Positions 8,275-25,531 of a DNA stretch of 64,000 nt are shown in pieces; position 1 is the stretch's first letter, and every line of letters starts with the position of its first letter. Both the position numbers and the translations under genes were made by a program. This stretch comes from Trichosphaerium sp. ATCC 40318 (lineage: Eukaryota; Protista; Tubulinea): positions 1 to 64,000 of the forward strand of contig JALMLS010000242.1 in assembly GCA_038496445.1 (NCBI GenBank), in the 5' to 3' direction. The notes under the pieces were generated by a model that saw only the letters and a program-made list of their open reading frames with translations, searched no databases and had not been told where the DNA came from.

Positions 8275-10097
8275 GTAATTGTATAAGAACGCAGAATGTA
8301 CACCCCTAGAGCCAGCGCATACTATAGAACAAGGTGGTGTCATTAACTTAGGTGTATTCGCTACAATAAAAATAGTATAGTTCGTTAGAAGCTTTAGGAC
8401 AATAAAGAAACTACGATCTAAAAGATAATTTGTTTATTCTGACAAATATTGTCTTCTCGATTTGTTATCTATTCTAATACCAAGAGCACTGCAATTCTTA
8501 CTTGAGTTCTCCAATTCTAGCAATACAGCCCTTGATAGCATGCGTCCATTCTGCTTCCTTAGGTCCACCAGGTTTCGCAACAGCTTTGTGCCATATTGGC
8601 TTTGCAATGTGCCCATTGTCAGCATAACGGCAGCCAGCAAACTTCGAAACAATGTCACCTTCTGTCAAATGCACTTCATATCTTATCACGCCAGCATACT
8701 TTTTGCTTTCACCGCACAGATTAAACAGATTGAACCAAGAATACACTCCAGGTGAATTAAATGAAGCGCCAGGGAGTGGTATTTCAGAAGCTACCATTTC
8801 AGCAAGAGCTCCGCCAAGTGAGTGACCTTAAGGAAAACCAAAGTTAGTTTTTTTTTTGTTTCCAATTTCACTCTTGTTGTTTTTGTGTACCTGTAATAAA
8901 GTCAGGTTTCATGTCAGATTTCTTTGCTATGTCCACTGCACATGTTTTAGCCTTGCTGATTGTAGGTCCTGAGTAAATCAAAGAGAAATCTTGTACAACA
9001 CCTACAAAGTATTTGAGTACATCAATTTCTTAACCAAAAATCAGAAAAAAACTCACCAAATAGCGAATCCGTTCCTCTGAGTGCAAGTATCCTCTTGTTC
9101 TTGTACTTGCCCTTTAGAACCAAGTACAATCCATATTGAATAAAGTTACCACTTGTAAAATACTCAGTCTGTTTTTTTAGGTTCCTCAAATGATCCTTAA
9201 ACTTGCCCTCCTCTTTGAAGTCGTATACGTCTTGTGAACATGCCAGCAATAATTGTCTAATATTGTCATCTTCCAAAGGAAGTGTGAATTTAGCAGGATG
9301 CTTGTCTTTAGGTTCTTTTTTGAGGATATCTTTCAAGCTTGGTGCTTTCTTGTCGGGGTTTATCCACTCCTTTAGATTTGCTTTCTCTCCGCTGTCCTTC
9401 TTTGTTGGTTTAGACTTTGGGTCATTCTTCTTAGGTGCTTTAGACATTTGGTTTTTTAGTTGTTGTTGTTCTAGTGGTTGTGATGTTTGTGATGATTGAG
9501 ATTTATACTTGCTTGATGAATTGTTGTTTTTTCCCGGTGAACTGCTCACGTGACATTTCACGTGAACAGATAAATCTACCTATGATCGAGTCAGGGTAAA
9601 GCTAACTATATTAATATGTAATTTTTGGGTGGTGTTACCAACTTGAACAATTTTCCCGCAAAAAAAAATAGTTTTCCCGTAGAAATGTTTGTACCCCGTT
9701 TTGGCTAACCAGCTAAAGTAATCCTAAAAAATTATCATTTGTCACCTTTAAATCAAGACCTGTAACGTTTTGACTGTAGCCCTTGTAATAAGACCACGTC
9801 GCTTTTGTATTCTTTAAGTATGTACGCAAAGATAGAAGTACAGTTTGTATTTTTATTTACAGGGGAGTTATTTTCCGTGAGATCGTTAAAATCTCAAAGA
9901 AAATTTCAAGCCCTTCCAAAGTATCTTGCGTTGAGTGTATGGTATTAGTAGCGCAATAGTACATTTTAGAGTATAGGAGACAACTGATGGACATTATAGG
10001 ACGTCAACAGAACTGCTAACAATGTACAAAATAAAATAATGGTTAAAAACACGTGGATTTAGTTGTTCCAGAACTGACAAGATCCGTCAGATCTTGA
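8275..10097. repeat. Left arm of a ~1.7-1.8 kb inverted duplication (partner 23845-25531)
   Basis: Reverse complement aligns by eye with 23845-25531 across the lipase gene, its introns and both flanks. About 150 bp (~9690-9830) is present only in this arm. Confidence 0.93.
8498..9447 (-). CDS. Class-3 lipase-like alpha/beta hydrolase, copy 1
   Basis: LALRGT oxyanion motif; nucleophile elbow TG|HSLGGALAEM; ASFNSPG; GDIVS (candidate Asp); C-terminal His. Two short introns. Confidence 0.8.
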
Positions 10098-10369
10098 CTA
10101 AACACTAAACCAAAAGTCACAAACAGCAAAAAGTAGCAAAGTTTTGCAAACTTGAATGATACGGACAATAAAGATACAAACATAGATTGCTTTTGTATAT
10201 TTCACAAAACGTCCCAATGTCAGGTGACCAATAATCGCACCACGCATACCTACGCACATGTACCAATCGCCAAAGTCTTAACGGCAACTTTAAGTATTAC
10301 AAATTGAAGAATAGCAGCCTGAAGACGTGAGCTGCTAAATCATAATAGGACACTAGGTCTCAGTGTTGG

Positions 10370-10585
10370 TGGTAAAAAAGAAGGACATGTCACAAGTTTT
10401 TACAAAGGTGTCAAGTATGGTACACTTGTAACTATGTAAATGACGATATAGAAGGAGAGTATAAATAGTTGTGGGAGGATGGTGCAGTCTTATAGGTGTA
10501 TTTATGCCAATGGTATACTTCATGGAGTGTACAACTGGTCTGGCAATGGTGAATTAACCGAAGAATACCACTATACCAATGAGCG
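10370..10585 (+). pseudogene. Degraded MORN-variant repeat remnant
   Basis: Translates piecewise to TCNYVNDDIEGEYK*LWEDG and RCIYANGILHGVYNWSGNGELTEEYHYTN, with a stop and frameshifts. Confidence 0.5.
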
Positions 10586-10892
10586 CGTTCTTTAGTTTGA
10601 TATGTACGCGCAAGTAATTCGCTTTGTCAGAGCTCCGGGTGAAAATAGTGGCGTAGTAGAACGTAAATGACACCACACTAGGATGAAAAAAATACCGCTA
10701 GATCCGGTTCTTTTTTTTTCCTCAATTATCACGTGATACTTATCGCGTAATTTTTGAGCGCGTGAGTATTTATTGAAGATTCCATGGTTTTTATTATTCT
10801 AATCGAGTGATAACCTAAAATAAATCACGTGTACACCAAAAAAAAAAAATGACTTATCGAACTTTGTTATTCTCTTTTGTGGCAACGAAACC

Positions 10893-12905
10893 ATGATTCT
10901 TTGGCTTTGTGTTATTCTGTGCGTAATGTCATGTACAGCTACGCAAATATCGTCTTGTAAGTGGCATAATAAAGTCTACTACCTACACGATTCTACAAAT
11001 AATACGAATACTTCATGCGCAGCAGGTAAGCATCGAATGGGGATCACAAGGGACAAAAAAATAAAATCAAAAACAATTTCATTTTCGACCCAAACCATTT
11101 CGCGTTTTTGTATCTTGTTAATAGTATCCAGGCTCGCATCCTTTGGTCATTGATTCAATTATGGAAGCTTCTGTTATTTCGCTATTCAAGGTACCATCGG
11201 GTTTTTTTCGTTTACCACGTGCCTAAGACAATACGAAGGACATTAAAGTGATGTTAACAAGAAAGAACTCAAAATTTTATTGGTCTGATGGCTCAAGCGT
11301 TTCTCCAACTCTATTCAAGGGAAATTTTGGAGTAAATAGTAAATCAGGTATTGGTGGTTGCGCTACTTTCAAAGGAGGGGTACGTACAGTGTGGGTACAC
11401 AAAATAAACCTAATAGATCTTTCACTTTTTTTTTTTGTAACTTTTTTTTCTAAAAGGCACTCGTTCCTGGATGTGCTCCAAATCGCTTTATTTGCGAAGC
11501 AATTCATAACGCAAATATATCAGTAGATAAAGAATGTGTTGTGGTACCTGACGAGGTACCTTGCGATCACGTACTAGCGGGTACATTTTTAGCAGCAAAC
11601 TTGACATTTTTATTTCTGAAAAACAGATCCTTTGCCATTTTCGACTTCAGGCATTTCTTCGTTTTAGATAACATGTCATCTTATTGACTTGCATTATAAT
11701 AGGTCACTGCTACAACGGTATCAAAAAAAGGTTGACTTGGATAGAAGCACAAGGTAAGTTGTATCACAAGTATAGCACTTTTTTTTTAAGTAACGGCTAT
11801 TGTTTCTAGGGCAATGTATGAAACAGGGTGGTTATATCGCTACGATTACAACTGCTGATGAGCAAACTTTTGTCCATAGTGTAAGAAAACAAGAGTTCAA
11901 CAGAGAAGGTGTATGGATAGGGCTTACGAGTGGATTTAGTAGTAATCACTTTGATTTTAAATGGGTACCTTTTCATTAATTATTTATTAACTAACACGTG
12001 ATACTCACTTAGGTTGCAACAAAAGAAAAGAGGGAGTTTGGTAGAACAATAAAGAAATATCCTTGGTCTAGCCGAGAACCAGAAAACAGAAACTTGCCAG
12101 GTTCAGTCAAAGAGAACTGTGTTGTTTTGTGCGTTTTTTTTTCTTTCGCTTTTCTTTTTTCAGAACGAGCACGTGTCACACACGTGCTTTGTTTATTGCA
12201 TTTTCAAGCCGTGTTAGTTCTTCAAAAGCATGTCTTTTAATAGTTGAGTATAGGGGTTCTGTCCAAAGGTGGGCTGATTATCGTTGTGATACTGTCGGAG
12301 CAATAAACGTTATTTGCGAGATTGAAAATGATCCAAGAACAAGAGGTAACAAATAGATTCCTGCTTTTTTCTTATAGTATTAAAAAAAAATTAGAAAACT
12401 TGGAGAGCAACGCTCCAGTAGTGGTTGTCAATTCAAATCTATATGTACCTGGTACGTACCTATAAAATAGCGTGTATTGTATGCTAACTATATTATTTCT
12501 AAAGGAAATATAAGTATCAACGTAGGAAGTGTTTTACAAATTAAAAAAGATACAGCAGTTGTTGATGTTTCAGAATGTTTCACAGGTTCGTTCACCATAG
12601 ACTCGAAGAATATAGAGGTAAATCATATCATTACTTAACAATACAGTTGTAGACTAATTAAATTTATTACTATAAAGTCAACAACAGCGTTAATTGCTCA
12701 ACGAAAGAATTGTGAAGAGATTAGCCCAGAAGTAAACAAAGATTATACTCAATGTGTCAGAAAATCAAGAAAAAACCTAAGAACCTCCTCAATTCTACGT
12801 CTTCAAATCACTAAATGTAGAGAACCTATTAACAATGGAAATATTTTAAAAATAACCTTTGAATCGATAATAACAATGATTGTAGTACTATGGTGTACAC
12901 TGTAA
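10893..12905 (+). CDS. Secreted/surface C-type lectin domain protein (probably two CTLDs, hydrophobic C-terminus)
   Basis: Signal peptide MILWLCVILCVMSCTA; first domain includes FYWSDGS. Second CTLD: TWIEAQGQCMKQGGYIATI, VWIGL, WSSREPE, ENCVV, WADYRC...VICE. Ends with IITMIVVLWCTL*. Confidence 0.85.
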
Positions 12906-12929
12906 ATAATATAAGAAAAAAAACTTTAC

Positions 12930-13600
12930 ATCTTTCAAGCTGGGTATAGGTATGAATCGCTCTATCTCCATTTTGTTGAGCCATCCCATCCGATACATTC
13001 CATTAAAGCATTCTCATATTCAAATGCTTTTAAAATAATGCCTTGCTTTCCTCTTATCTCATAATGAACATCGGGATAGCACTTCAATGCAAGTCCTTCA
13101 ATATCTTTACAAACTTCTGCCAAACCTGATTACCCATATCATCAACAAGAGTGACACTTATTTTGGACATCTAACCGGTTTTATTGTCATTAATCAGGAG
13201 GATGAATTGATTTGGAAAAATGATAAGCAGAAACTCTATCTATTTCCGATTTTCTTGAATTTTGTCTTCCACAATAGATTAAATGTGTTGTTATCTTCCA
13301 GGTACTTGTACATGCAATCTCTATTGATAATGATTAAGTAATCACCCTGACCAATGGCTTGTCTTACATCCTCAACATACACAGAGCGCTTAATACCAAT
13401 TTTTCCCATTAATAACTGTTGTTCGGGTGTCAACTATACATCCAAGCTCAACTTTTCAGCAATATCCAACAGAATTTTGGAACTGTCCGCTTCCATTTTG
13501 GCTCAAAGCCATACTTGATGGCCAAAATCTTCCTTTGCGACAGTGGCCAATATGCATATTGCGCAAGATCAACGCAATATTCAAAACACGTGTCATGAGG
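12930..13600 (-). pseudogene. Degraded coding remnant, family unknown
   Basis: Protein-like stretches switch between frames (ORF 13236-13433; KDIEGLALKCYPDVHYEIRGKQG) with stops. No recognisable motif. Confidence 0.25.
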
Positions 13601-14100
13601 CGTCACCAATAGAAAAGATCTTTCGAATGAATAGTAGTAATGTAAAGGTCAAGTCACAAAGCTACGTTTTAACAGCAAAAAAGGGTTGGTAGCCAACTGA
13701 CATGCCAAGCGCCTTTCGTAGATACAAGAGAAAGCAAAGTACACGTCATCGCTTTAATTGTTTATTTCTCGACACTAGGCCCTTGATAGCATCACGTGTA
13801 ACTTGGTAAAGGTGTCGCAATATGACCATAAGCATATACAGTGAATGGAGTGGTGCACAATCCTGTTTTATATTTTTTTAAACCCTAACTTACACGCTGT
13901 TGCTTGAGGTTTTATGTCCATACTATGGTAGTTATATGGCCCATATTTAAATATAGTGCTGGAATAGCCCGAGATAAGAACGTGGTATCAAGAGCGCTTC
14001 GAGATTTAAGTGAAAAGGAGTTAAGGTCATAACTTTACGTCTACTTAAACCATTCTCAATAACAACCAACAACAACAACTACCACTACTAAATCAACTAA

Positions 14101-14832
14101 ATGTCTGACTCTGAAAACGTATGCGCTGATTATTTTGTCTGGCAGTAAACTTAACACGTGATTTTTAGACAATCAAAATTAAAGGACACTACTTCGGACC
14201 AACTGCCATTGGAGGTGTTCAATCCGACTTAAAATCACTTCAAGAAGAGATAAATAACGCTGACACTATCATATCTCCTATAGGTTATTGGTACTGTACA
14301 ATGAAAACTGTGTCACGTACTTATTCTGTTAGGCCATTCCATATGTTCAAAACAGCAAGTCGTGCCAAACCAACACCTTGTTTCATTATGGCCTACGTTC
14401 AAAAGGAAGACGAGAGAGTTCAGAATGCTCTTCTTGTCTTGTATGAAGAAAGCAGAGGTACACTTTGACAACTTTTTGAAAAAGTTGTCCTTATTCTTGC
14501 TCAGGACCTATTGGACAACCTAATCACTGTATTCCGCTTGTACTTGGCGGAGATAAGCAATGGACAATGGGCAAAATCACTAATAAAACTTCTAAAGATC
14601 AAGTGAGGCTCTATGCACGTGATCCAGACGGCAAAGGTACTGTCTTTAAAAATACAAAACCTAAATCTAATGGTTGTTAGGGACTACACCTTGCTTTGCA
14701 GTTGGAAGGAAGAGCTTGAATGATTTTGCGAAATTACTAAAACCTTATGTTCGAGTTATTACTAAGGATAGAAAAAAGAAACTTGGTGTTGCACTTGAGG
14801 CTTTTGATGATCCTTCACTTCTTTCCGATTAA
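14101..14832 (+). CDS. Small multi-exon hypothetical protein
   Basis: ATG at 14101. Four short GT-AG introns join an open frame (MSDSEN|TIKIKGHYFGPTAIGG...GVALEAFDDPSLLSD*). AATAAA follows the stop. Confidence 0.6.
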
Positions 14833-14939
14833 TCTTTGTATCAATAAATTGTATATTTCGAAGACAAAGAAAATACATAGTTTTTCAAGTACTAGCACTA
14901 GTTACTAGTTTTTGTGTCCTTACCTTTAATCACTCAAAC

Positions 14940-15360
14940 TTACTCTTGGAAAAAAACTTCAGTATAATGTTGAGGATAGTAATAACTCAGTAAGAGGCCA
15001 ACAGTGTTTTTTAGATATATCAAAATAAAACTTGTAATCCTTTTTTTCACAAAAAGATAGGCCGAGCAGACATCCTCTCCTTAATAACCCACAGAGCGCC
15101 CCACTCCATTGACAACGGCGTACACTGGAACACCGGCCAAAGGACGCTCGAGACCAAGGAACTGTACCAGTTCATACCAGTTTCTCTCAGTCTAACATGA
15201 TCCTAGATTGATGTTTGTGTTGAGAATCAGGTACGATACCTCGAGGCACTGAATTCTCATCAACTTCAAATCATGTCGTTATTTTCTATTTAGAAAGCGC
15301 CAAGAGAACACACACTCCTTTTGCTTTCCATTATCTTGGAAATCCAGAAATCCTTTTGTA
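14940..15360 (-). pseudogene. Possible degenerate TIR-like domain remnant
   Basis: After removing a 37-nt GT-AG intron (15203-15239) it reads KECVFSWRFLNRK*RHDLKLMRIQCLE|DHVRLRETGMNWYSSL...SMEWGALWVIKERMSARPIFF, with one in-frame stop. TIR resemblance is by eye only. Confidence 0.3.
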
Positions 15361-16191
15361 CATTCAAGTTTATCCACAAAATAAATTGTGGGATATCACA
15401 AAGTTGTAGCGTTTGTCGTGCTGTTTAGAGGTTCGTGGTTTTGGATTGAATTGACCCACGTTGAGGCGAGATATTGGAGGTATAGTGAAAGAAATGATAA
15501 TGCACACGCAGTAGAGGTAACGGCACCTATCGACAAGCAACTTTTATTTCATTTGTTCGTTTTCAAATTAGTAATTTATTAAACACTGTTGGAAGGGCTA
15601 CAACTCTCGTGTGTATACCTCTAACGCTCCGAAGCGTTTACTTCAGTTGGATATTTAACGGTTAAACTGAAATTCAAAAAATGGATACCGCTCGAATTCC
15701 ACCTTACTTTCGAACCGTATTGGTGTAATACTATTGCTTTTATTGATGTGAAGGAAGGAAACTGCATTTGTAAGCGGTTAGGTTGAACAGGCTTCTACAA
15801 CCTTAAATAGGTGTTTTGAATAGAGAAACATTAAGAACCACGCGTGGAACAGAGAAATTCGATATAGAAATCAGTTTTTGTAGCGATAGCGAAACGATTT
15901 TTTAGATCACGTTTTTTAACCGAATTTTACACAAAAACTGTTCAAAATGTTATAAATCATATATTTACACTCCTGTTGTTTTCGTACCGGTGCATTTTGA
16001 GTGATACAAACTAGAGTATGTGTAAAATCTCTTTTTGGCTCTTTTCTAAGCTCAAACACTTCGTGACGCCTGAATAACACTGACGAATTGCTCCAGTTCG
16101 CTTACGACAGAAGCCATTGTATTTTCACTTAATTCGACTAACGATTTTCAACGTGTCTTTATTGTTTTGTTTCTCCAAGTGACGTGCAAAA

Positions 16192-16655
16192 CAGAGGTAT
16201 TGCAATCCGTCAAAGTCAGAGACGCATTTTTGTGGGCCATTCGGGCCATAAAACAAGGGATTGGCCCATTTCGCTTTAAATAATTGTTTTGCAGACTTTC
16301 GAGAACGTATTACGTCACGGCATGCTGTCTATGAGTGCTGGAGAAGGCTATAATCGCTTTAAAATTGTTTGGTTGCTCCATTACTGCCAAAAGTATTTCT
16401 GGTCGGTTAGGAAGCCCAAATATCTCTGATTTAAATACATCGTATGTCATATATGGGCTGAATAGGCTACAAGCCCTTTTTATGAGCCCTAAACTGTCTC
16501 AATTAATATTTATATGCAATGTGATGCTATACAGAAAGGTTTGAAGTTAAACAGACGGCCACATTGTTCTGTAGGGTGTTTTTGTAAAAGTCCGAAAATT
16601 CATATTTTTTTGAAGGTTAGAACTTTTTTTAAAGTCGTAGTTGCAAACATCTATG
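16192..16655. mobile_element. Candidate degenerate non-autonomous DNA transposon (MITE/hAT-like)
   Basis: Imperfect terminal inverted match CAGAGGTATTGCAA ... TTGCAAACATCTA and clustered GGGCC/AGCCC motifs in non-coding DNA. No target-site duplication found. Confidence 0.25.
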
Positions 16656-16696
16656 TTGATTTAGAGGCTCTTGTTAGAGTTCAAACAAATATATTT

Positions 16697-17457
16697 ATGT
16701 TCTTTCTTTCTTGGGTTGCATCAGGAAGAAACCAGAAGCTCTTAAGAAGGTATGAAGGTCAAATAAGCACGTGATATGTAGTTTGACAAACATAGATATT
16801 AGATCAGATGTTTGGTCCTACTCAACAAGATATAATAGCTATTGTTGGTAAATCAGAGGTTGCAACTATTGAGGTATCACGTGTAGCTATTGTATTGGTA
16901 GCAGCATTAGAAGTTGACATAGAAGAACAAGTTATCTTTGATTTTAATACAGGCGGTATTTCTCAGGTTATAAAAGCACTTCCTGATGTTTCTCAAGAAC
17001 ATCGAGGTACCCCTAGCAAATATTCTTTAGGTATTAGCGTATTCTTATAACCGATAGTGGCTATGATGTCAAAATCTTTTGCTTATAGTAGAGCTGCGTT
17101 TGGATATCGAGACGCGATTGTTTTCATATGGTACTTATCTCAGTTTTTTTTGTACAAGCTTCTAACTACAGCAGCACCAACTACGGATGCTCCTACTACA
17201 AAAGCTGCAACAACAGAACGGCCAACTACAGACGCAACAACAACAGGCGCTCCTAAAACTGGTACTTGAGCGATTTATTAGACTTTATTATCATCTTTTT
17301 CAACTTAACAGTATTAGATGCGCCAACAAACAAAGCTCCATCAACAGAGGCACCAACAACAGAAGCTCCTACCTCTCTAGCGCCAACAACTGAGGCTCCA
17401 ACCGAGGCACCTGCAACTATAGCGCCACCATTGAGCTACACAGGCTTTGATTGTTAG
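16697..17457 (+). CDS. Thr/Pro/Ala-rich (PTTEAPT) mucin-like protein, probably partial or degenerate
   Basis: Repeats APTTDAPTTKA and APTTEAPT at 17165-17430, split by a short intron. Upstream exons are uncertain. Confidence 0.45.
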
Positions 17458-17640
17458 ACAGCACAAAATAACGACTCCTAGAGCCAAGCAGAGCATTCTT
17501 TCAGCCTCTCAAGTGTATTTAGTAACAACAGTATAGCCAAAATTTCCAAAAAAAAAAACCATTTAGTACAGACGCCGTGTAGCTTGTACTGGATTGTGAA
17601 TATTTTAATTACTGTGTGGGACACGTTATTGTCTGTGTGC

Positions 17641-19941
17641 TTATTTGGATGTTTTCTTTGTTGAAGGATAATCTGTGTCTTGTAGCTCCAGAACAGTTTG
17701 ATCTAAGAGATGTTTTACTGCAACAGTATCCTTGTGTTTGTTAAGAAACATATTTAGCTTTTTAGATTCCTGACAGAGAAACCAGGAAGTTATATTGTTT
17801 ATGATGAACGAGTTGCATCCCAATAATCCATATCAAGAAATTCGCTCATTTTTGAAAGATAATAATCTTTGTCACTGTCAGTAATCTTATCACGTGTACT
17901 ATGATTAAATACATAGAATATCACAACAGATTGTAGAGAATCTATACAATACTTATCTGAGAATTTTAAGAGCTTCAATAGAGTATCCAAATCAAGATTA
18001 GGAGGTATGTCATCAAAGTATGCAAAGTGAATAAAAGTTTTGATAATGAACACATCTCCTTCTAAGCTAATGCTTGTATTGTCGTCACCATTTGTCCCAA
18101 GATTGTTAGAAAGAATAGCTCCTTCAAAGAATGTAGCTCGGCACATCAATATCGCCTAGTTGAATTACATAAGTAGAAGCATAAAAAAATGAGGGACTAA
18201 CCTTGTGACATTTAATACAATCTGTTCCAGTATTAATATCAAAGTCTTGAGTGTTTGATTTGTACAGCTTTTTGAGGGATTTTAGAAGTTTGCTTCTATG
18301 TTTGCAAGATCCGTATTTGCGTAAGGAACAAATAAAGGCATTATCTTCGTTCATGTTGGCATATATTTCTTGGCTTAATTTTGCAACATCAAGTAACAGT
18401 GTTGATGTTTTTCTTGGAAACATGAAAGGTTGGATGGATGATACTATGGCATGATTAGTGTGTTTATGTAAGGTTTAGGATTATACATACATGACGAAAA
18501 TTCTTTTTCTCTGTCACTACCGACGTCTCCTTTCCCTGAGGTTTGTCTTAAAACATATGATATCACATTAGGATTTTCTATCAAGGATGTAAAAGTAGCA
18601 CCAAGAAAACATGCTGGGTTATCTAGTCTTGAACAAATGACATTGAACACGTGCATAGCGCAATCGTATGCATTCATTGTTGTTCCTATCGTATATGTAT
18701 AAGCTACATGGGTAAACAGGTTGGTACCTTTGTAATCAGGGAAGAACTCTCTAAACTTTTCCGGATGGTTTTGTAACTCTTCCTCAAACAAGTCAAGTTT
18801 TGTCAATACAAGGACAATAGGAGCATTGACATGAGAACGTTGTATTATATCTTGAAGTGATTCCAATGACTCTTCAAACGCATTACTTGTATCATCTTCA
18901 CAAACGTACAAGTAACTTTTTTGAGAGAAGGGTTAATTACATAAACACAATATGACACTCACCTATCAAGAGATATACAATAGATTAAATAATCTATGCC
19001 ATCTAAAACATGTACCCACCGTCTTCTCTCACTACAACTTCCTAGAAGGATTTGACATACAGAAAAGAAAAAAGTCGAAAACACAAAGACTTGCAAAAAC
19101 AAACCTCCAACATCCCCCAATCTATATTCAGTACCATCAACTTCACCTTCTAAGTCAAAAATGTTGAAAGAACGTGAATAGTAGTTAAGCCTTTGTTCAT
19201 AAGTCACAACGAAAGAATCTGCAGTTTGAGAGCAAATTGAATCAATGAAACTTAGAAAAAAAAAAAGTTAAAACAAAGGTATCATAAGGTTAACAATCCA
19301 CTCACGCTTTCATGTTTTTCTTACAGGATAAAACGATACTTTTAAAGTCAGTATACAAAATCATGTTCATGAATTCTTTGTTGTCTTTCAACCTAGCCCA
19401 AGGGTTAGGTCACAAAGAGATTGACTTACAAAATAAAAATATGAATACTGTTTTAAAGCGTCAATGTGTTGTTGTGTCCATGTGTCATCAGTCATATCTA
19501 CAAACGACTTCACCATATCTTGTGTCGTCTATTTTATGTCATATATTACTAATTAGTGCTTTAGATGTATCTTACGCTGTCCAGAGTTGAAAATTCAGGT
19601 TGTGCAGATAAAACTCGTAAGAACCATTGTACAAAATATATACCCTTGCTACTGTAATACCGATGGTACCAAGGAGTTAATTTTTCCTCTTTTAAGAGTC
19701 TAAACTGCAACAGAAGCTTGGATTTCCCTAAACACTTTTTCAGTAAATCGCATTAACTCCGATTCTGAACAGTACCACTCATGCTAGGTCCTAAGTTTTG
19801 ATGTTATTTCGAATGTCAACAAAAATTGTGTAGCTATCTATAAATAGTTACCACTGTCATACCTACGACTAGTACATGTTTCTGCTTCTCTTTACGATGT
19901 ATTTGATTTAAAGGCTTTTTTTTAGATTTGAAGTTGCCCAT
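17641..19941 (-). CDS. Heterotrimeric G-protein alpha-like subunit fused to a C-terminal BTB/POZ domain
   Basis: MGNFKS N-terminus; HVLVVG|PSMSG|KSKLLLQF (G1); DVG|GSCSERRRWVHVLDGIDYLIYCISLD (G3); FEESLESL; VLVLTKLDLFEE (G4); FPDYKG. An in-frame splice leads to BTB (DFDINTGTDCIKCHK|AILMCRATFF...FIHFAYFD...LLKFSDKYCIDSL). Probable 1-nt frameshift near 17820. Confidence 0.85.
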
Positions 19942-20002
19942 ACTGTGCTCACGCTATCCGCAAAAAAGTTGTGAACCTAAGTTTGACCACCGTAAAAAAT
20001 TC

Positions 20003-20880
20003 ATGAAATAAATTTCTGCAGCAGGCAGCCCATCAATATGTGTTAGTCTTAGAAGAACAGTTTTTCCTATTTTCTACGGTGGTAGTTGGTCTTATAGCCT
20101 TAATACTGGCAACATGGATGTTCTTGATTCTATTCTTCTACAGAGACATGACAGACTTTTCCACGCGTCTACTATTGTATTTATCGATTGTAGATTGGGT
20201 ATTATGCCTTAACGAAATAATATTCGCTCTATCCTCCCTATTAGTCCGCACAAAACGAAGCAACATTATAAACCAATACTTATTTGAAAGCCTGAAAGTT
20301 TTGCTAAAGACACTTTAGAACCGTTTTGCTCCTTGGCAGCTTATTTCGCTGTTTATACTCACTTGACAGTATTGTTCGTAGTCAGCAATTTCTGTAAATA
20401 TTCTTCTGCATCAAGTACAAGTACGCTATCTATCGGTGTACATAAATCACGTGATCCTTTTTTTTATTTTTTTTACCTTTGTAAAATCACGTGCTCGCAC
20501 ATGTCAAAAAATTTATCACGGCTATTTAAGTTGACTGTTTTGCACCAGGAAAACAGTTGTGGTTGCGGAGCCTTTTATACTATTCTTCATTTTTGTGTTC
20601 CTTGTCATGGCTCTGGCACCTTTTGCTACAAGAACTTATGGTCGAGAGCCTTGGGGTGGGTAAGTGACGTGATATCAAAGATGTTACTAACAGCTGTTAA
20701 TAGATGCTTCATGAGGGGTCAGTCCCTTTTAGATAAGTTGTACGTTTGTACCAAAATCTCGCTGTCATTAACTCGATAGATTATTTGGGCTTGTGTCTGT
20801 ATTCCCGTTCTTTATTTCATTCATATTTATTGCTGTACTCAACGCATTGTCAATATACGAGCTATTTTTCGTTGTGAACT
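20003..20880 (+). pseudogene. cAMP-receptor/GCR1-like GPCR, truncated after TM5
   Basis: TM1; FSTRLLLYLSIVD (TM2); PFCSLAAYF (TM3); TM4 then TYGREPWGG|CF loop; TM5 FPFFISFIFIAVLN. The sequence then switches to mucin repeats. The start codon context looks frameshifted. Confidence 0.65.
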
Positions 20881-21230
20881 TCAGAGGCTCTAACTACTGC
20901 TACACAAACAACTGTTGCTCCTACAACAGGTGCACCAACAACAGAGGCTCCTACAACGGCTGCTGCAACAACAAACGCTCCAACCACTGAAGCTTCAACC
21001 ACAGATGCACCTACAACTGGTACTTGATCGATATTATTTTTACCTATCTCCACCTAACTACAGTAGATGTGTCAACTACAGATGCACCTACAACTGCGGC
21101 GCTCCACCAACCGATGCGCCTACTACAAGTGCTCCAACCACTGAAGCACCGACTACAGCAACACCAACTACGGATGCTCCAACAACAGAGGCTACTACTA
21201 AATCTCCAACTACAAGGCTCAACAAATGGT
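20880..21230 (+). repeat. PTTEAPT mucin-repeat gene fragment, paralogous to 17165-17430
   Basis: Same coding repeats and a similar intron (GGTACTTGA.CGAT.TATT...) as in the 17.2 kb copy. Confidence 0.7.
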
Positions 21231-21397
21231 ACTTCCTACTTTACTTTCTAGAACTAACTTTATTTATGGAGCGTAAATATAAAATGTAAAATTGTTTTGT
21301 ATTCAAAAGGCTGCACAATTCGGCAAATGCAAGGCAAAGAATTTGGCTGTTTTCTTGGTTTTTTCTATTTTTTTTGTAGCTCTTCTAATATGTTTAG

Positions 21398-21490
21398 GTA
21401 TTGGTGGTGGTATGATCCAAGCACCACTTATGCTTGAACTAGATATATTACCTCAAGTTGTTACAGCAACATCAGTGTTTATGGTGGTAC
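21398..21490 (+). pseudogene. Isolated exon of a TauE/SafE-type (sulfite exporter family) transporter
   Basis: GIGGGMIQAPLMLELDILPQVVTATSVFMV flanked by AG and GT. No other exons nearby. Confidence 0.6.
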
Positions 21491-21584
21491 ATCACAAAAA
21501 ACAAAGATAAAATTGATTTCAAGCCCTGTGTCATGCTGCCAAGGCAATACAGCTCAAAAGTCAGCTCAGGAGATGAAGATGATG

Positions 21585-23328
21585 TTATTCAACATATGAG
21601 ACAGATACGATAGAACCAACTGCAATAATCTATTGTAGTCTATGAGGATTGGCCTAAAAAAAAGGAGGAAATACTGTGGATTACCTGATGCTGTCCTTCT
21701 ACTCTGAGAAACAGACTTCCGAAGTAATTTGACTCCTTTTTTGTACAACAGTACATAGGAGAAGATGGCTTTATCCGTATGATGCCAATTTCATCATTTG
21801 ATAGTTTTTTTGGTTGCTTTGGTTCAACCACTTCATGTGTTTCTACTTTCAAACACCCAATAACTTTAGTTACTGAACATTTCTTCTTTGCAGACTTTGT
21901 GTGCCCTACCAAAAGTTTGTTAAACTAGAGTACACAAAACTTATGTGTGGTAGAAAAAACACCGACAAGAAGATGTCAGTTTTCAAAAGAAATGTAATGT
22001 AATGAATGCTGATAAGTATCATGTGTTGACATAACCTTTTGGATTTTTTTTTTGATTTTTTTTTTGAAGGGTTTTGTACCGAAGCGTAACATGTTGCCCT
22101 CATAAATATGATTTGATGTGCTAATAACATGTGCTGTAAACTCAGAAACTAAAATCTGTTGTTTCTTATTTGGGATTAATGCAAGAATGACATATCCGCG
22201 TTTGACATTTTTTCTTGATACACCTTCTAACAAACATCCAACATGAGTACCTTTATGCGCTTCTTTATGCTTGGTATGTTCATATTCCATGTCCATAACC
22301 TTTGTTTTTAATCCAGTAGGAGCGATGATAACGTTGTCTCCTACTCGCAAGCACCCTGACATAACGGTTCCTGCTACAACAAATCCTACATCTTTAACTG
22401 TCAAGGTGAAAGTGACGGGCATTTTCAATGATGTTGTTACTTCACGATTCTCGCCAATAGTATCAAATGCTTCAAGTAATGTGTATCCTTTCCACCATGG
22501 CATGTTACTTGATATATCCACCAAATTATCTCCAAGGGCTCCAGAAACTGGAATAAACAAAACATCTTCAATGTTGTAGTTTATGCTAAAAACAAGAGGT
22601 TACTTTTGACCTACGAGTTGATAAACGAAAGGAAATGACGTACTTTCTCATTATCTTTTGGATTCCTGACACTACTTCAATGTACCTCCCTTTATCATAT
22701 TTAACACCAGTACTAATACTATCCATATACGTAACAGCAACAATTATGTTTGAAAATCTGAGTATCTTGGCAGATGATAACAAATGTATTATTGTACCAT
22801 GACGAGCTATTGATGATTCAAACATTCCTTGAGCTGCAGAAACAACCAATAAAATGCAATCACATGATTTAGCCAATGTTGTAATCAATGGTTCGGTGTA
22901 TGTATCTGCTGCAGTAATAGACACCTTGACAAAAAATAAAGTTAGTTATATGGCAACTAAAATATTGTGTCATCACGCAACACTTGTACGTGGCGGGTCT
23001 TTCTATAGAATCAAAAAACACAATGTCGATTCTGTCTTGGTTCGCATTTTTTGACAAAACGTGGGGCTTTGTAATGACGTACGTTGCAGTTATTGGTGGC
23101 AAGTGAATAATAACAGTTTCGCAATGGATTTGCGAATGTATTGAAACAAAGTAATGCGGAAGCATACTCCTGGCTTGGTCTGGTTGACCTCTTTCTCATC
23201 CTTTGTATTGTTTGTTCCCTTATTATACCACATTTATACAACAAGTGGCCCAGGAGGGTTGATGTTCCGTTATCAACGTGACCATGAATAAAAACATTAA
23301 TAGTCTGTTTCTTGACCGTTTTAGCCAT
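21585..23328 (-). CDS. Highly divergent EF-1alpha/HBS1-like translational GTPase paralog (pseudo-GTPase)
   Basis: INVFIHGHVDNGTSTLLGHLLYKCG; DCILLVVSAAQGMFES; IIVAVTYMD; FIPVSGALGDNLVDISSNMPWWKGYTLLEAFD; domain II LKMPV...VGFVVAGTVMSG; domain III ending IIAVGSI. A frame change is needed near 23050-23085. Confidence 0.85.
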
Positions 23329-23844
23329 TGTACAAAGCAACAGATAACGTTCCAGTGAGAATCAAAACGTAAAAGCCTAATTAAAGTCTGTGTCAGTGGT
23401 TTTGCCTTTGAATGTATTGGTACTGCGTAGTTCTTACGTATTTGAAGTATAATAAAACAAATTAATGATTTGACGCCTGGCGTCTCTAAACGTTTTTTTG
23501 TGTTAGTTAAGTTCGCTACTTAAGTCTTGCTTGAAGTAAGTAGGCCCTATCATTTACAGTAACTGTAATGGACACTGCTGGCAACTCATTGGATAATGAT
23601 GATACCACAATAAAAATCATGGATTCTTCCTTAACGAGAAGCACAGGCTTTTCTGCTCACGAATTCACTGATGTTGGAGCTGCAATTAAAGCATGTAGCA
23701 AGATGTACGCTACATCGCGTTGGTGATAATTGGTGAATGAGTCGTAATACTGGTTACCATGATACTTTATAGTTTGGGTATTATAGCTCCGTTAAAAACT
23801 ACAAGATCGATCTTGTTAGTTCTTGCAAGATCTGTTAAAAACTA

Positions 23845-25531
23845 CAAGATCTTACAGATCTTGTCAGTTCTGGAAAACTACATCCACGTGTTTTTAACCA
23901 TTATTTTATTTTGTACATTGTTAGCAGTTCTGTTGACGTCCTCTAATGTTCATCAGTTGTCTCCTATACTCTAAAATGTACTACTACGCTATACTAATAC
24001 CGTACACTCAACGCAAGATACTGGAAGCGCTTGTAATTTTCTTTGAGATTTTAACGTTATCTCACCTTTAATACCTCTTGTAAATAAACTGTACTTCTAC
24101 ATTTCTACGGGAAAACTATTTTTTTTTTGCGGGAAAATTGTTCAAGTTGGTAACACCACCCAAAAGTTACATAGAAATATAGTTAGCTTTACCCTGACTC
24201 GATCATAGGTAGATTTATCTGTTCACGTGAAATGTCACGTGATTTGTTTTGAGCAGTTCACCGGGAAAAAACAACAATTCATCAAGCAAGTATAAATCTC
24301 AATCATCACAAACATCACAACCACTAGAACAACAACAACTAAAAAACCAAATGTCTAAAGCACCTAAGAAGAATGACCCAAAGTCGAAACCAACAAAGAA
24401 GGACAACGGAGAGAAACCAAATCTAAAGGAATGGATAAACCCCGACAAGAAAGCACCAAGCTTGAAAGATATCCTCAAAAAAGAACCTAAAGACAAGCAT
24501 CCTGCTAAATTCACACTTCCTTTGGAAGATGACAACATTAGACAATTATTACTGGCATGTTCACAAGACGTATACGACTTCAAAGAGCAGGGCAAGTTTA
24601 AGGATCATTTGAGGAACCTAAAAAAACAGAAGGAGTATTTTACAAGTGGTAACTTTATTCAATATGGATTGTACTTGGTTCTAAAAGGCAAGTACAAGAA
24701 CAAGAAGATACTTGCACTCAGAGGAACAGATTCGCTATTTGGTGAGTTTTTTTTTGATTTTTGGTTAAATAAATAATGTACTCATGTACTTTGTAGGTGT
24801 TGTACAAGATATCTCTCTGATTTACTCAGGACCTACAATCAGCAAGGCCAAAAGATGTGCTGTAGAAATAGCAAAGAAATCTGACGTGAACCCTGACTTT
24901 ATTACAGGTACACAAAAACAACAAGAGTGAAATTGGACCGTTGTAAAAACAAAAAAAAAACTAACTTTGGTTTTCCTTAAGGTCACTCACTTGGCGGAGC
25001 TCTTGCTGAAATGGTAGCTTCTGAAATACCACTCCCTGGCGCTTCATTTAATTCACCTGGAGTGTATTCTTGGTTCAAACTGTTTAATCTGTGCGGTGAA
25101 AGCAAAAAGTATGCTAGCGTTTTAAGATATGAAGTGCATTTGACCAAAGGTGACCTTGTTTCCAAGTTTGCTGGTTGCCGTTCCCCTGACAATGGGCATA
25201 TTGCAAAGCCAATATGGCACAAAGCTGTTGCGAAACCTGGTGGACCTAAGGAAGCAAAATGGAAGCATGCTATCAAGGGTTGTATTGCTAGAATTGGAGC
25301 ACTCGAGTAAGAATTGCAGTTCTTGGTATTAGAATAAAAAGACATCGATTTGTCAGAATAAACAAATTACCTTTTTAGATCGTAGTTTCTTTATTATCCT
25401 CCTAAAGCTTCTAAGGAAACTATACAATTTCAATTTTTATTGTAGCGGATACAACTAAGTTAATGACACCACCTTGTTCTATAATATGCGCTGACAACTA
25501 GGGTGTACATTCTGCGTTCTTATACAATTAC
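23845..25531. repeat. Right arm of the inverted duplication (partner 8275-10097)
   Basis: Reverse-complement match to the left arm. Short local repeats (AAAACTACAAGATC) sit at the inner boundary, 23795-23860. Confidence 0.93.
24351..25310 (+). CDS. Class-3 lipase-like alpha/beta hydrolase, copy 2
   Basis: Same exon structure and motifs as copy 1 (LALRGT, GHSLGG, SFNSPG, GDLVS). Confidence 0.8.

Follow-up and report, generated by a model that had tools for sequence, protein, structure and literature searches.

The 64,000-nucleotide stretch of DNA analyzed here (the window; positions 1 to 64,000 of the forward strand of contig JALMLS010000242.1 of Trichosphaerium sp. ATCC 40318, labelled C206 in comparisons between contigs) carries on its minus strand, from 19941 to 17799, a gene in which a G-alpha-like domain is very probably fused to a BTB domain, judging from the reading frame and from related loci in the same assembly. 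The gene would belong to a lineage-specific family of lipid-anchored, catalytically dead G-alpha-BTB proteins that dock Cullin-3 in a RhoBTB-like manner, with the window holding one haplotype copy. For this explanation as a whole, which is the best that we can offer, we regard the case as evenly balanced. A preliminary description of the DNA had read the locus as one gene in which a BTB domain is joined to a G-alpha that lacks the catalytic Gln and the switch-I Arg. That part stands, but a frameshift in this allele and a family of at least 10 loci had been missed.

The window is low-GC eukaryotic DNA with a guanine-plus-cytosine content of ~36%. The gene comprises 10 exons whose phases add up to a single frame of 553 codons, and its introns are GT..AG in nine of nine cases, with lengths of 46-72 nucleotides (nt). 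Exons were joined in a local script only, for the phase check and the translation; in searches and family scans the gene model was used one exon at a time. From the start codon onward, the features are as follows.

19863-19941, minus strand: exon 1, with the ATG, the sequence MGNFKSKKK (N-myristoylation-type motif and polybasic patch) and a short stretch preceding the P-loop.
19776-19790, minus strand: exon 2, a 15-nt micro-exon in the middle of the P-loop (G-PSMS-G) with AG/GT flanks.
19576-19727, minus strand: exon 3, the GKS of the P-loop and the first part of the helical insert.
19449-19528, minus strand: exon 4, helical insert; its donor GTATTC is the only one that keeps the frame, and the exon is kept in paralogs.
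19306-19392, minus strand: exon 5, helical insert.
19105-19250, minus strand: exon 6, a degenerate switch I (LNYYSRSFNI) and DVGG.
18963-19041, minus strand: exon 7, switch II (DVGG-S-CSERRRW) with Ser at the position of the catalytic Gln.
18491-18915, minus strand: exon 8, the C-terminal half of G-alpha with TKLD as G4, G-A-T as a remnant of G5, alpha5 and the start of the linker.
18444-18490, minus strand: intron 8, 47 nt, GTATGT..TAG, the G-alpha-to-BTB splice, which keeps the frame.
18202-18443, minus strand: exon 9, a linker of ~65 residues that leads into the first BTB strands and the start of a helix (DFDINTGTDCIKCHK).
17799-18155, minus strand: exon 10 as read in the window allele, the BTB core from profile position ~28, 10 frameshifted codons and TAA.
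17832-17833, minus strand: deletion site, 1 nt missing relative to five other copies.
17641-17798, minus strand: out-of-frame remnant of the C-terminal 3-box/BACK-like helices, ending in the ancestral stop TAA 17641-17643.

The gene had earlier been taken to extend to 17641. This position is the stop of another frame, and the frame as written ends with TAA at 17801-17799. An intron bridging into the 17641 frame was considered and rejected: no phase-compatible GT..AG pair is available, and the paralog alignment shows continuous coding sequence with a 1-nt deletion. The in-frame splice from G-alpha to BTB was recovered as described, and retention of intron 8 would run the frame into a stop at TAG 18444-18446.

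Support for the fusion comes from the 70.3-Mb assembly itself, where at least 10 paralogous loci have the same exon order, with 40-98% identity (the values given below for single loci are measured against exon 8 of the window gene). Their common order is G-alpha exons, linker exon, BTB exon and C-terminal helices, and the exon 2 micro-exon was present in all eight paralogs inspected for it. The closest locus is C194 with 98% identity, followed by C45:195k and C18 with ~70%; C26 and C513 have 80% over the first half of exon 8 and ~60% over the remainder. For C99 and C348 the values are 46-55%, and for two C13 genes and C45:89k ~50%. Six copies share the conserved donor and acceptor of intron 8. 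The equivalent of intron 8 in C45 and C18 measures 51 nt and is open and in frame, so that a single frame runs from the G4 region of G-alpha into the first BTB strands, spliced or not; the junction-spanning single open frames in these two loci have 270 and 282 residues, respectively. In a more distant set (C36, C270, C294 and C459), G-alpha matches lie 1.1-1.3 kb upstream of BTB matches, and the latter begin at profile position 28, which is the intron position of the window gene. No processed or cDNA-like copy of the gene was found in the assembly.

The identity of the G-alpha half was assessed by profile and sequence searches. Exon 8 alone matched PF00503 with an E value of 2e-12 and 47.3 bits against a cut-off of 48.8; in a PF00503 profile search of the genome, the window exon scored 46.2 bits and its C194 allele 49.2 bits. 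G-alpha chains were the only significant matches in a sequence search of the PDB (E 2e-5 for exon 8). The G-motifs stand in canonical order (GPSMSGKS, DVGG, ERRRW, TKLD with Asn replaced by Thr, and G-A-T), and a helical insert of ~110 residues separates G1 from switch I. The gene thus shares with canonical G-alpha subunits (PF00503, e.g. G-alpha-i1) the GxxxxGKS motif, the insert, DVGG, ERRRW, (T)KLD and an N-terminal lipidation motif. It differs from them in the replacement of the catalytic Arg, the catalytic Gln and the Mg-binding Thr: a HMMER alignment to the solved G-alpha 8vga places Tyr at the switch-I catalytic Arg, Phe at the Mg-binding Thr and Ser at the switch-II catalytic Gln. The motifs named in the preliminary description were all found, namely the MGNFKS start in exon 1, the intact G1 GPSMSGKS spread over exons 1-3, the eroded switch I, DVGGS in place of DVGGQ in switch II, and TKLD in exon 8. 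The start fits the N-myristoylation pattern of PROSITE, PS00008, G-{EDRKHPFYW}-x(2)-[STAGCN]-{P}.

Two further differences from canonical G-alpha subunits concern the ends of the domain. The P-loop of G-alpha-i1 starts at about residue 40 and that of the window gene at residue 27, which leaves a short version of the N-terminal helix that holds G-beta-gamma. At the other end, the alpha5 tail, which in canonical subunits enters receptors, is not free, and the chain runs on into the linker and the BTB domain. With both features, canonical coupling to receptors would be unlikely, and probably also coupling to G-beta-gamma.

Conservation within the family bears on the nucleotide cycle. The GxxxxGKS P-loop is kept in all paralogs and is encoded via the conserved micro-exon, (T)KxD is kept in nearly all, and MG[NS]xx[ST] with a basic patch begins all paralogs inspected except C45:195k. 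The catalytic Gln is absent from every paralog inspected, its place being taken by S, T, F or R. Some deeper members retain R-T-T-G-I in switch I, and one C13 gene has AIGR in place of DVGG. Because the P-loop and the Asp of (T)KxD are kept across paralogs, nucleotide binding without hydrolysis is plausible for the G-alpha-like domain. Because the Mg-binding Thr is lost and one paralog lacks DxxG, a nucleotide-independent pseudo-GTPase is, from the same motifs, equally possible. An unrelated degenerate G-alpha fragment of 196 residues in a public library has VDWSRR in place of DVGGQR; as this fragment is from another source, catalytically dead G-alphas occur elsewhere too.

For the BTB half, intron 9 splits the domain directly after DFDINTGTDCIKCHK, and in the paralogs the exon following this intron begins at BTB profile position 28-29. 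A Pfam scan of window exon 10 alone gave no match. C99, C348 and the two C13 genes have last exons that are 50-61% identical to window exon 10 and have 46 invariant columns in common; each of these exons matched PF00651, with 21.4-24.9 bits (cut-off 20.5) over profile positions 28-109 of 110. A PDB sequence search with the last-exon profile yielded no match. The predicted model of the last exon has a BTB fold, with the BTB/3-box of SPOP as the best structural fit, and the BTB core is followed by four helices, which are conserved across paralogs and align with the 3-box and C-terminal region of SPOP. The BTB part is a classical, divergent BTB domain with four conserved helices.

Several cullins are encoded in the genome, among them a Cullin-3 orthologue at C86:193340-195847. 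In the PDB, Cullin-3 chains are the only matches to its N-terminal exon (E 1e-10), which retains the stretch NAIQEI..SGLSFEELYR, and its C-terminal piece scores best on Cullin-3. A Cullin-1-like gene is located on C66.

To describe selection, ratios of non-synonymous to synonymous divergence (dN/dS) were calculated by the Nei-Gojobori method on exon-wise codon alignments. Within the young clade, values were 0.6-0.8 for the G-alpha part and 0.1-0.6 for the BTB exon. Deeper pairs gave 0.3-0.47 and 0.2-0.4, respectively, and the intact pair C99/C348 gave 0.18 and 0.17. Apart from the pair formed by the window gene and C18, which is taken up below, both halves are under purifying selection across the family, and this selection is stronger on the BTB half. 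In the young clade of the window gene itself, selection looks relaxed. For the C13 pair (470430-473648 and 485508-488711), synonymous divergence (dS) was 0.03-0.10 in the linker/BTB half compared with 0.36 in the G-alpha half; it was likewise far lower in the linker/BTB half for C194 compared with C26 and C45. The low dS suggests that the BTB half is kept uniform by a process such as gene conversion or exon shuffling.

Taken together as a mechanism, an N-myristoylated, polybasic N-terminus would place the protein on a membrane. The G-alpha-like domain would hold nucleotide without hydrolyzing it, or be indifferent to nucleotide, and its alpha5 C-terminus would lead through a linker of ~75 residues into the SPOP-like classical BTB domain and the 3-box/BACK-like helices. 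The BTB domain would dimerize the protein, and the BTB/3-box part would dock Cullin-3. The faster-evolving G-alpha-like domain would then be the only candidate for a target-binding or regulatory module, and its likely partners would be readers of G-alpha, e.g. RGS proteins, effectors or G-beta-gamma.

We infer this mechanism by analogy with two systems: RhoBTB, which brings targets to Cul3 (PMC10413933, PMC3812982), and the KCTD5/Cul3 ligase, a known BTB-Cul3 link to components of heterotrimeric G proteins, namely G-beta-gamma (PMC10348674). The preliminary description proposed the roles of a "GTP-locked" protein and a "Cul3 receptor", which the gene may fulfil; with the Mg-binding Thr replaced and DxxG lost in one paralog, a form independent of nucleotide is as likely as a locked one. 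One dN/dS value is at odds with purifying selection, namely 2.19 for the BTB exon of the window gene versus C18; the 78 codons that remain beyond the C18 frameshift contain only 10 differences.

The likeness to RhoBTB1/2/3 lies in an N-terminal GTPase fold with crippled catalysis and a BTB module on one chain, in the same domain order. In contrast to RhoBTB, the GTPase of the window gene is of the heterotrimeric G-alpha type with helical insert and matches G-alpha only, not Rho. A single BTB domain with four helices takes the place of RhoBTB's two tandem BTB domains and its C-terminal domain, and the window gene has a myristoylation-type motif and a polybasic N-terminus. No sequence kinship with RhoBTB was found beyond the shared folds, and Cul3 binding is predicted here by analogy. 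SPOP and other MATH-BTB proteins, of which SPOP is the best structural match, resemble the family in the BTB core with 3-box-like helices and in forming an expanded family; MATH-BTB expansions have a conserved BTB part with a faster-evolving partner domain, and the same division is found here. The partner domain, however, is G-alpha-like, N-terminal and connected by a long linker, and no MATH domain is present. KCTD5 differs in having a pentameric T1-type BTB domain plus its own C-terminal domain, which binds G-beta-gamma, whereas the window gene has a G-alpha-like domain built in. In the extra-large G proteins (XLG) of plants, additional sequence is fused to a G-alpha-like domain whose catalytic motifs are degenerate. 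This extension is found at the N-terminus in XLG and does not consist of a BTB domain.

The copy in the window lacks a single base near its end. At 17832/17833 the window reads GA-TATGG compared with GATTATGG, GACTATGG or GAATATGG in five other copies of the paralog alignment. The deletion alters 10 codons, brings in the TAA at 17801-17799 and removes ~62 C-terminal residues, which form the 3-box/BACK-like helices; the equivalent of 17641-17798 is in frame in C194, C45, C26 and C513. C194, which is intact at the deletion site, is a syntenic haplotig with 93-99% identity across >35 kb. The remaining length differences in coding sequence between these alleles, of 3 nt and 9 nt, both keep the frame. 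Of the six close copies, C194 alone shows no damage in the exons examined: the BTB exon of C18 has lost 1 nt, C26 and C513 have a common 2-nt deletion in exon 8, and C45:195k has lost the MGN start. If the deletion is real and not an assembly error, the window copy is probably impaired. The two haplotigs (window 8275-25531 and C194:38175-57866) are collinear except for an inverted segment that bears the gene, at ~8.3-24.1 kb of the window. This segment is flanked by inverted repeats of ~1.4 kb (window 8275-9720 and 24099-25531), pointing to a polymorphic inversion or to a flip in the assembly.

We tentatively entertain the possibility that, in a family evolving by birth and death, the window copy is a null allele or one that is decaying, in which case the architecture would be real and the product truncated and non-functional, or not made at all. 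The absence of the 1-nt deletion from the five other copies and the position of C194 as the only intact one of six are in line with this, as are dN/dS values of 0.6-0.9 within the clade and nine non-synonymous versus three synonymous changes between the window and C194. The reading with intron 8 retained stops at 18444 as well. However, a single missing base may be an assembly error, which takes reads to tell, and the 3-nt and 9-nt differences between the haplotypes respect the frame. A truncated product would still contain the G-alpha and BTB core, and the deeper paralogs are clearly constrained (dN/dS 0.2-0.4).

A different role for the BTB domain, which we think rather unlikely, would be dimerization or oligomerization only, without a cullin. 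The fusion would in this case cluster a nucleotide-insensitive G-alpha-like domain at the membrane, to serve G-beta-gamma, RGS proteins or receptors as a decoy or scaffold. Three findings argue against it: the Pfam match is to classical PF00651 and not to the K-tetramerization type, the helices after the BTB core that align with the SPOP 3-box/C-terminal region are conserved in paralogs, and a Cul3 whose N-terminal BTB-binding region is conserved is encoded in the genome.

It is improbable that the G-alpha-like domain still cycles, as a self-activating switch with a partner supplying catalytic residues in trans and with nucleotide-regulated engagement of BTB and Cul3. Most members do keep the P-loop, the Asp and Gly of DxxG and the Asp of (T)KxD, and self-activating G-alphas are known in protists according to one report (PMC9283941). 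However, other residues stand in for the Arg, the Gln and the Mg-binding Thr, the replacements vary among paralogs (S, T, F, R) as if unconstrained, and DxxG is lost in one paralog. Finally, that two adjacent genes were wrongly joined, one for a G-alpha with its end at 18444 and one for a BTB protein with its start at Met 18423, is essentially excluded: retention of intron 8 does put a stop after exon 8, with an ATG (MFPRK) 20 nt downstream, but a spacer of ~20 nt is implausible, intron 8 has the standard size for this genome and a conserved GT/AG, the same stretch is open and in frame in C45 and C18, and the halves are adjacent in every paralog down to 40% identity.

The gene lies head to head with a gene for a multi-pass membrane protein (20040-21510, plus strand), the start codons being ~100 nt apart. 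From reading its sequence, the product contains a Thr/Pro-rich stretch, APTTEAPTT, together with a GIGGG..P motif that resembles the one in TauE/SafE transporters, and similar Thr/Pro-rich open reading frames are found at 17057-17457. The idea that this neighbor encodes a G-protein-coupled receptor was dropped, because the sequence resembles that of a membrane protein of the TauE/SafE type that contains a Thr/Pro-rich stretch. The genome as a whole has a very large set of G-alpha sequences: 152 Pfam matches at exon level on ~60 contigs. Open frames of 530-716 residues continue past the G-alpha C-terminus at C91, C126, C112, C80 and C128/C182/C221, and further G-alpha fusions in the genome are likely.

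The architecture was then sought in public data. A HMMER search of 1.84 billion protein representatives with the junction-spanning C18 open frame detected neither a close relative nor one with a BTB domain; its 11 weak matches were plain G-alpha except for one repeat protein. No match was obtained in a word search with exon 8, in a metagenome protein scan or with an exact spliced-junction pattern. The ESM Atlas returned plain G-alpha clusters only, all scoring below 0.9. A text search of a paper library found no G-alpha-BTB phrase, and BTB is not mentioned in a eukaryote-wide survey of G-protein domain architectures. The G-alpha plus BTB layout was not found in the papers or protein libraries searched; the searches used pieces of the gene and passed only weak G-alpha matches, so a BTB domain fused to a canonical G-alpha elsewhere could be missed.

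G-alpha subunits are textbook stand-alone switches. A G-alpha permanently wired to a ubiquitin-ligase adaptor would, if true, mean that the RhoBTB principle was invented independently a second time, and would form a direct link of the heterotrimeric G-protein machinery to Cullin-3. For the biology of this family, the window copy is less valuable than the intact haplotype C194 or the better-constrained genes C99/C348, C13 and C45:89k. As a bolder and, in our judgment, unlikely extension, the family might be a new class of membrane-tethered Cullin-3 substrate receptors, with a non-hydrolyzing, nucleotide-holding G-alpha fold as the variable recognition module. In such a class, genes would arise and be lost by birth and death while gene conversion holds the BTB half uniform, as in expansions of MATH-BTB genes, and the proteins to be marked for ubiquitination would be G-protein signaling components or foreign proteins. 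With the lipid anchor and the P-loop kept and the catalytic residues discarded, the family would offer a natural experiment on what the G-alpha fold does without its GTPase cycle.
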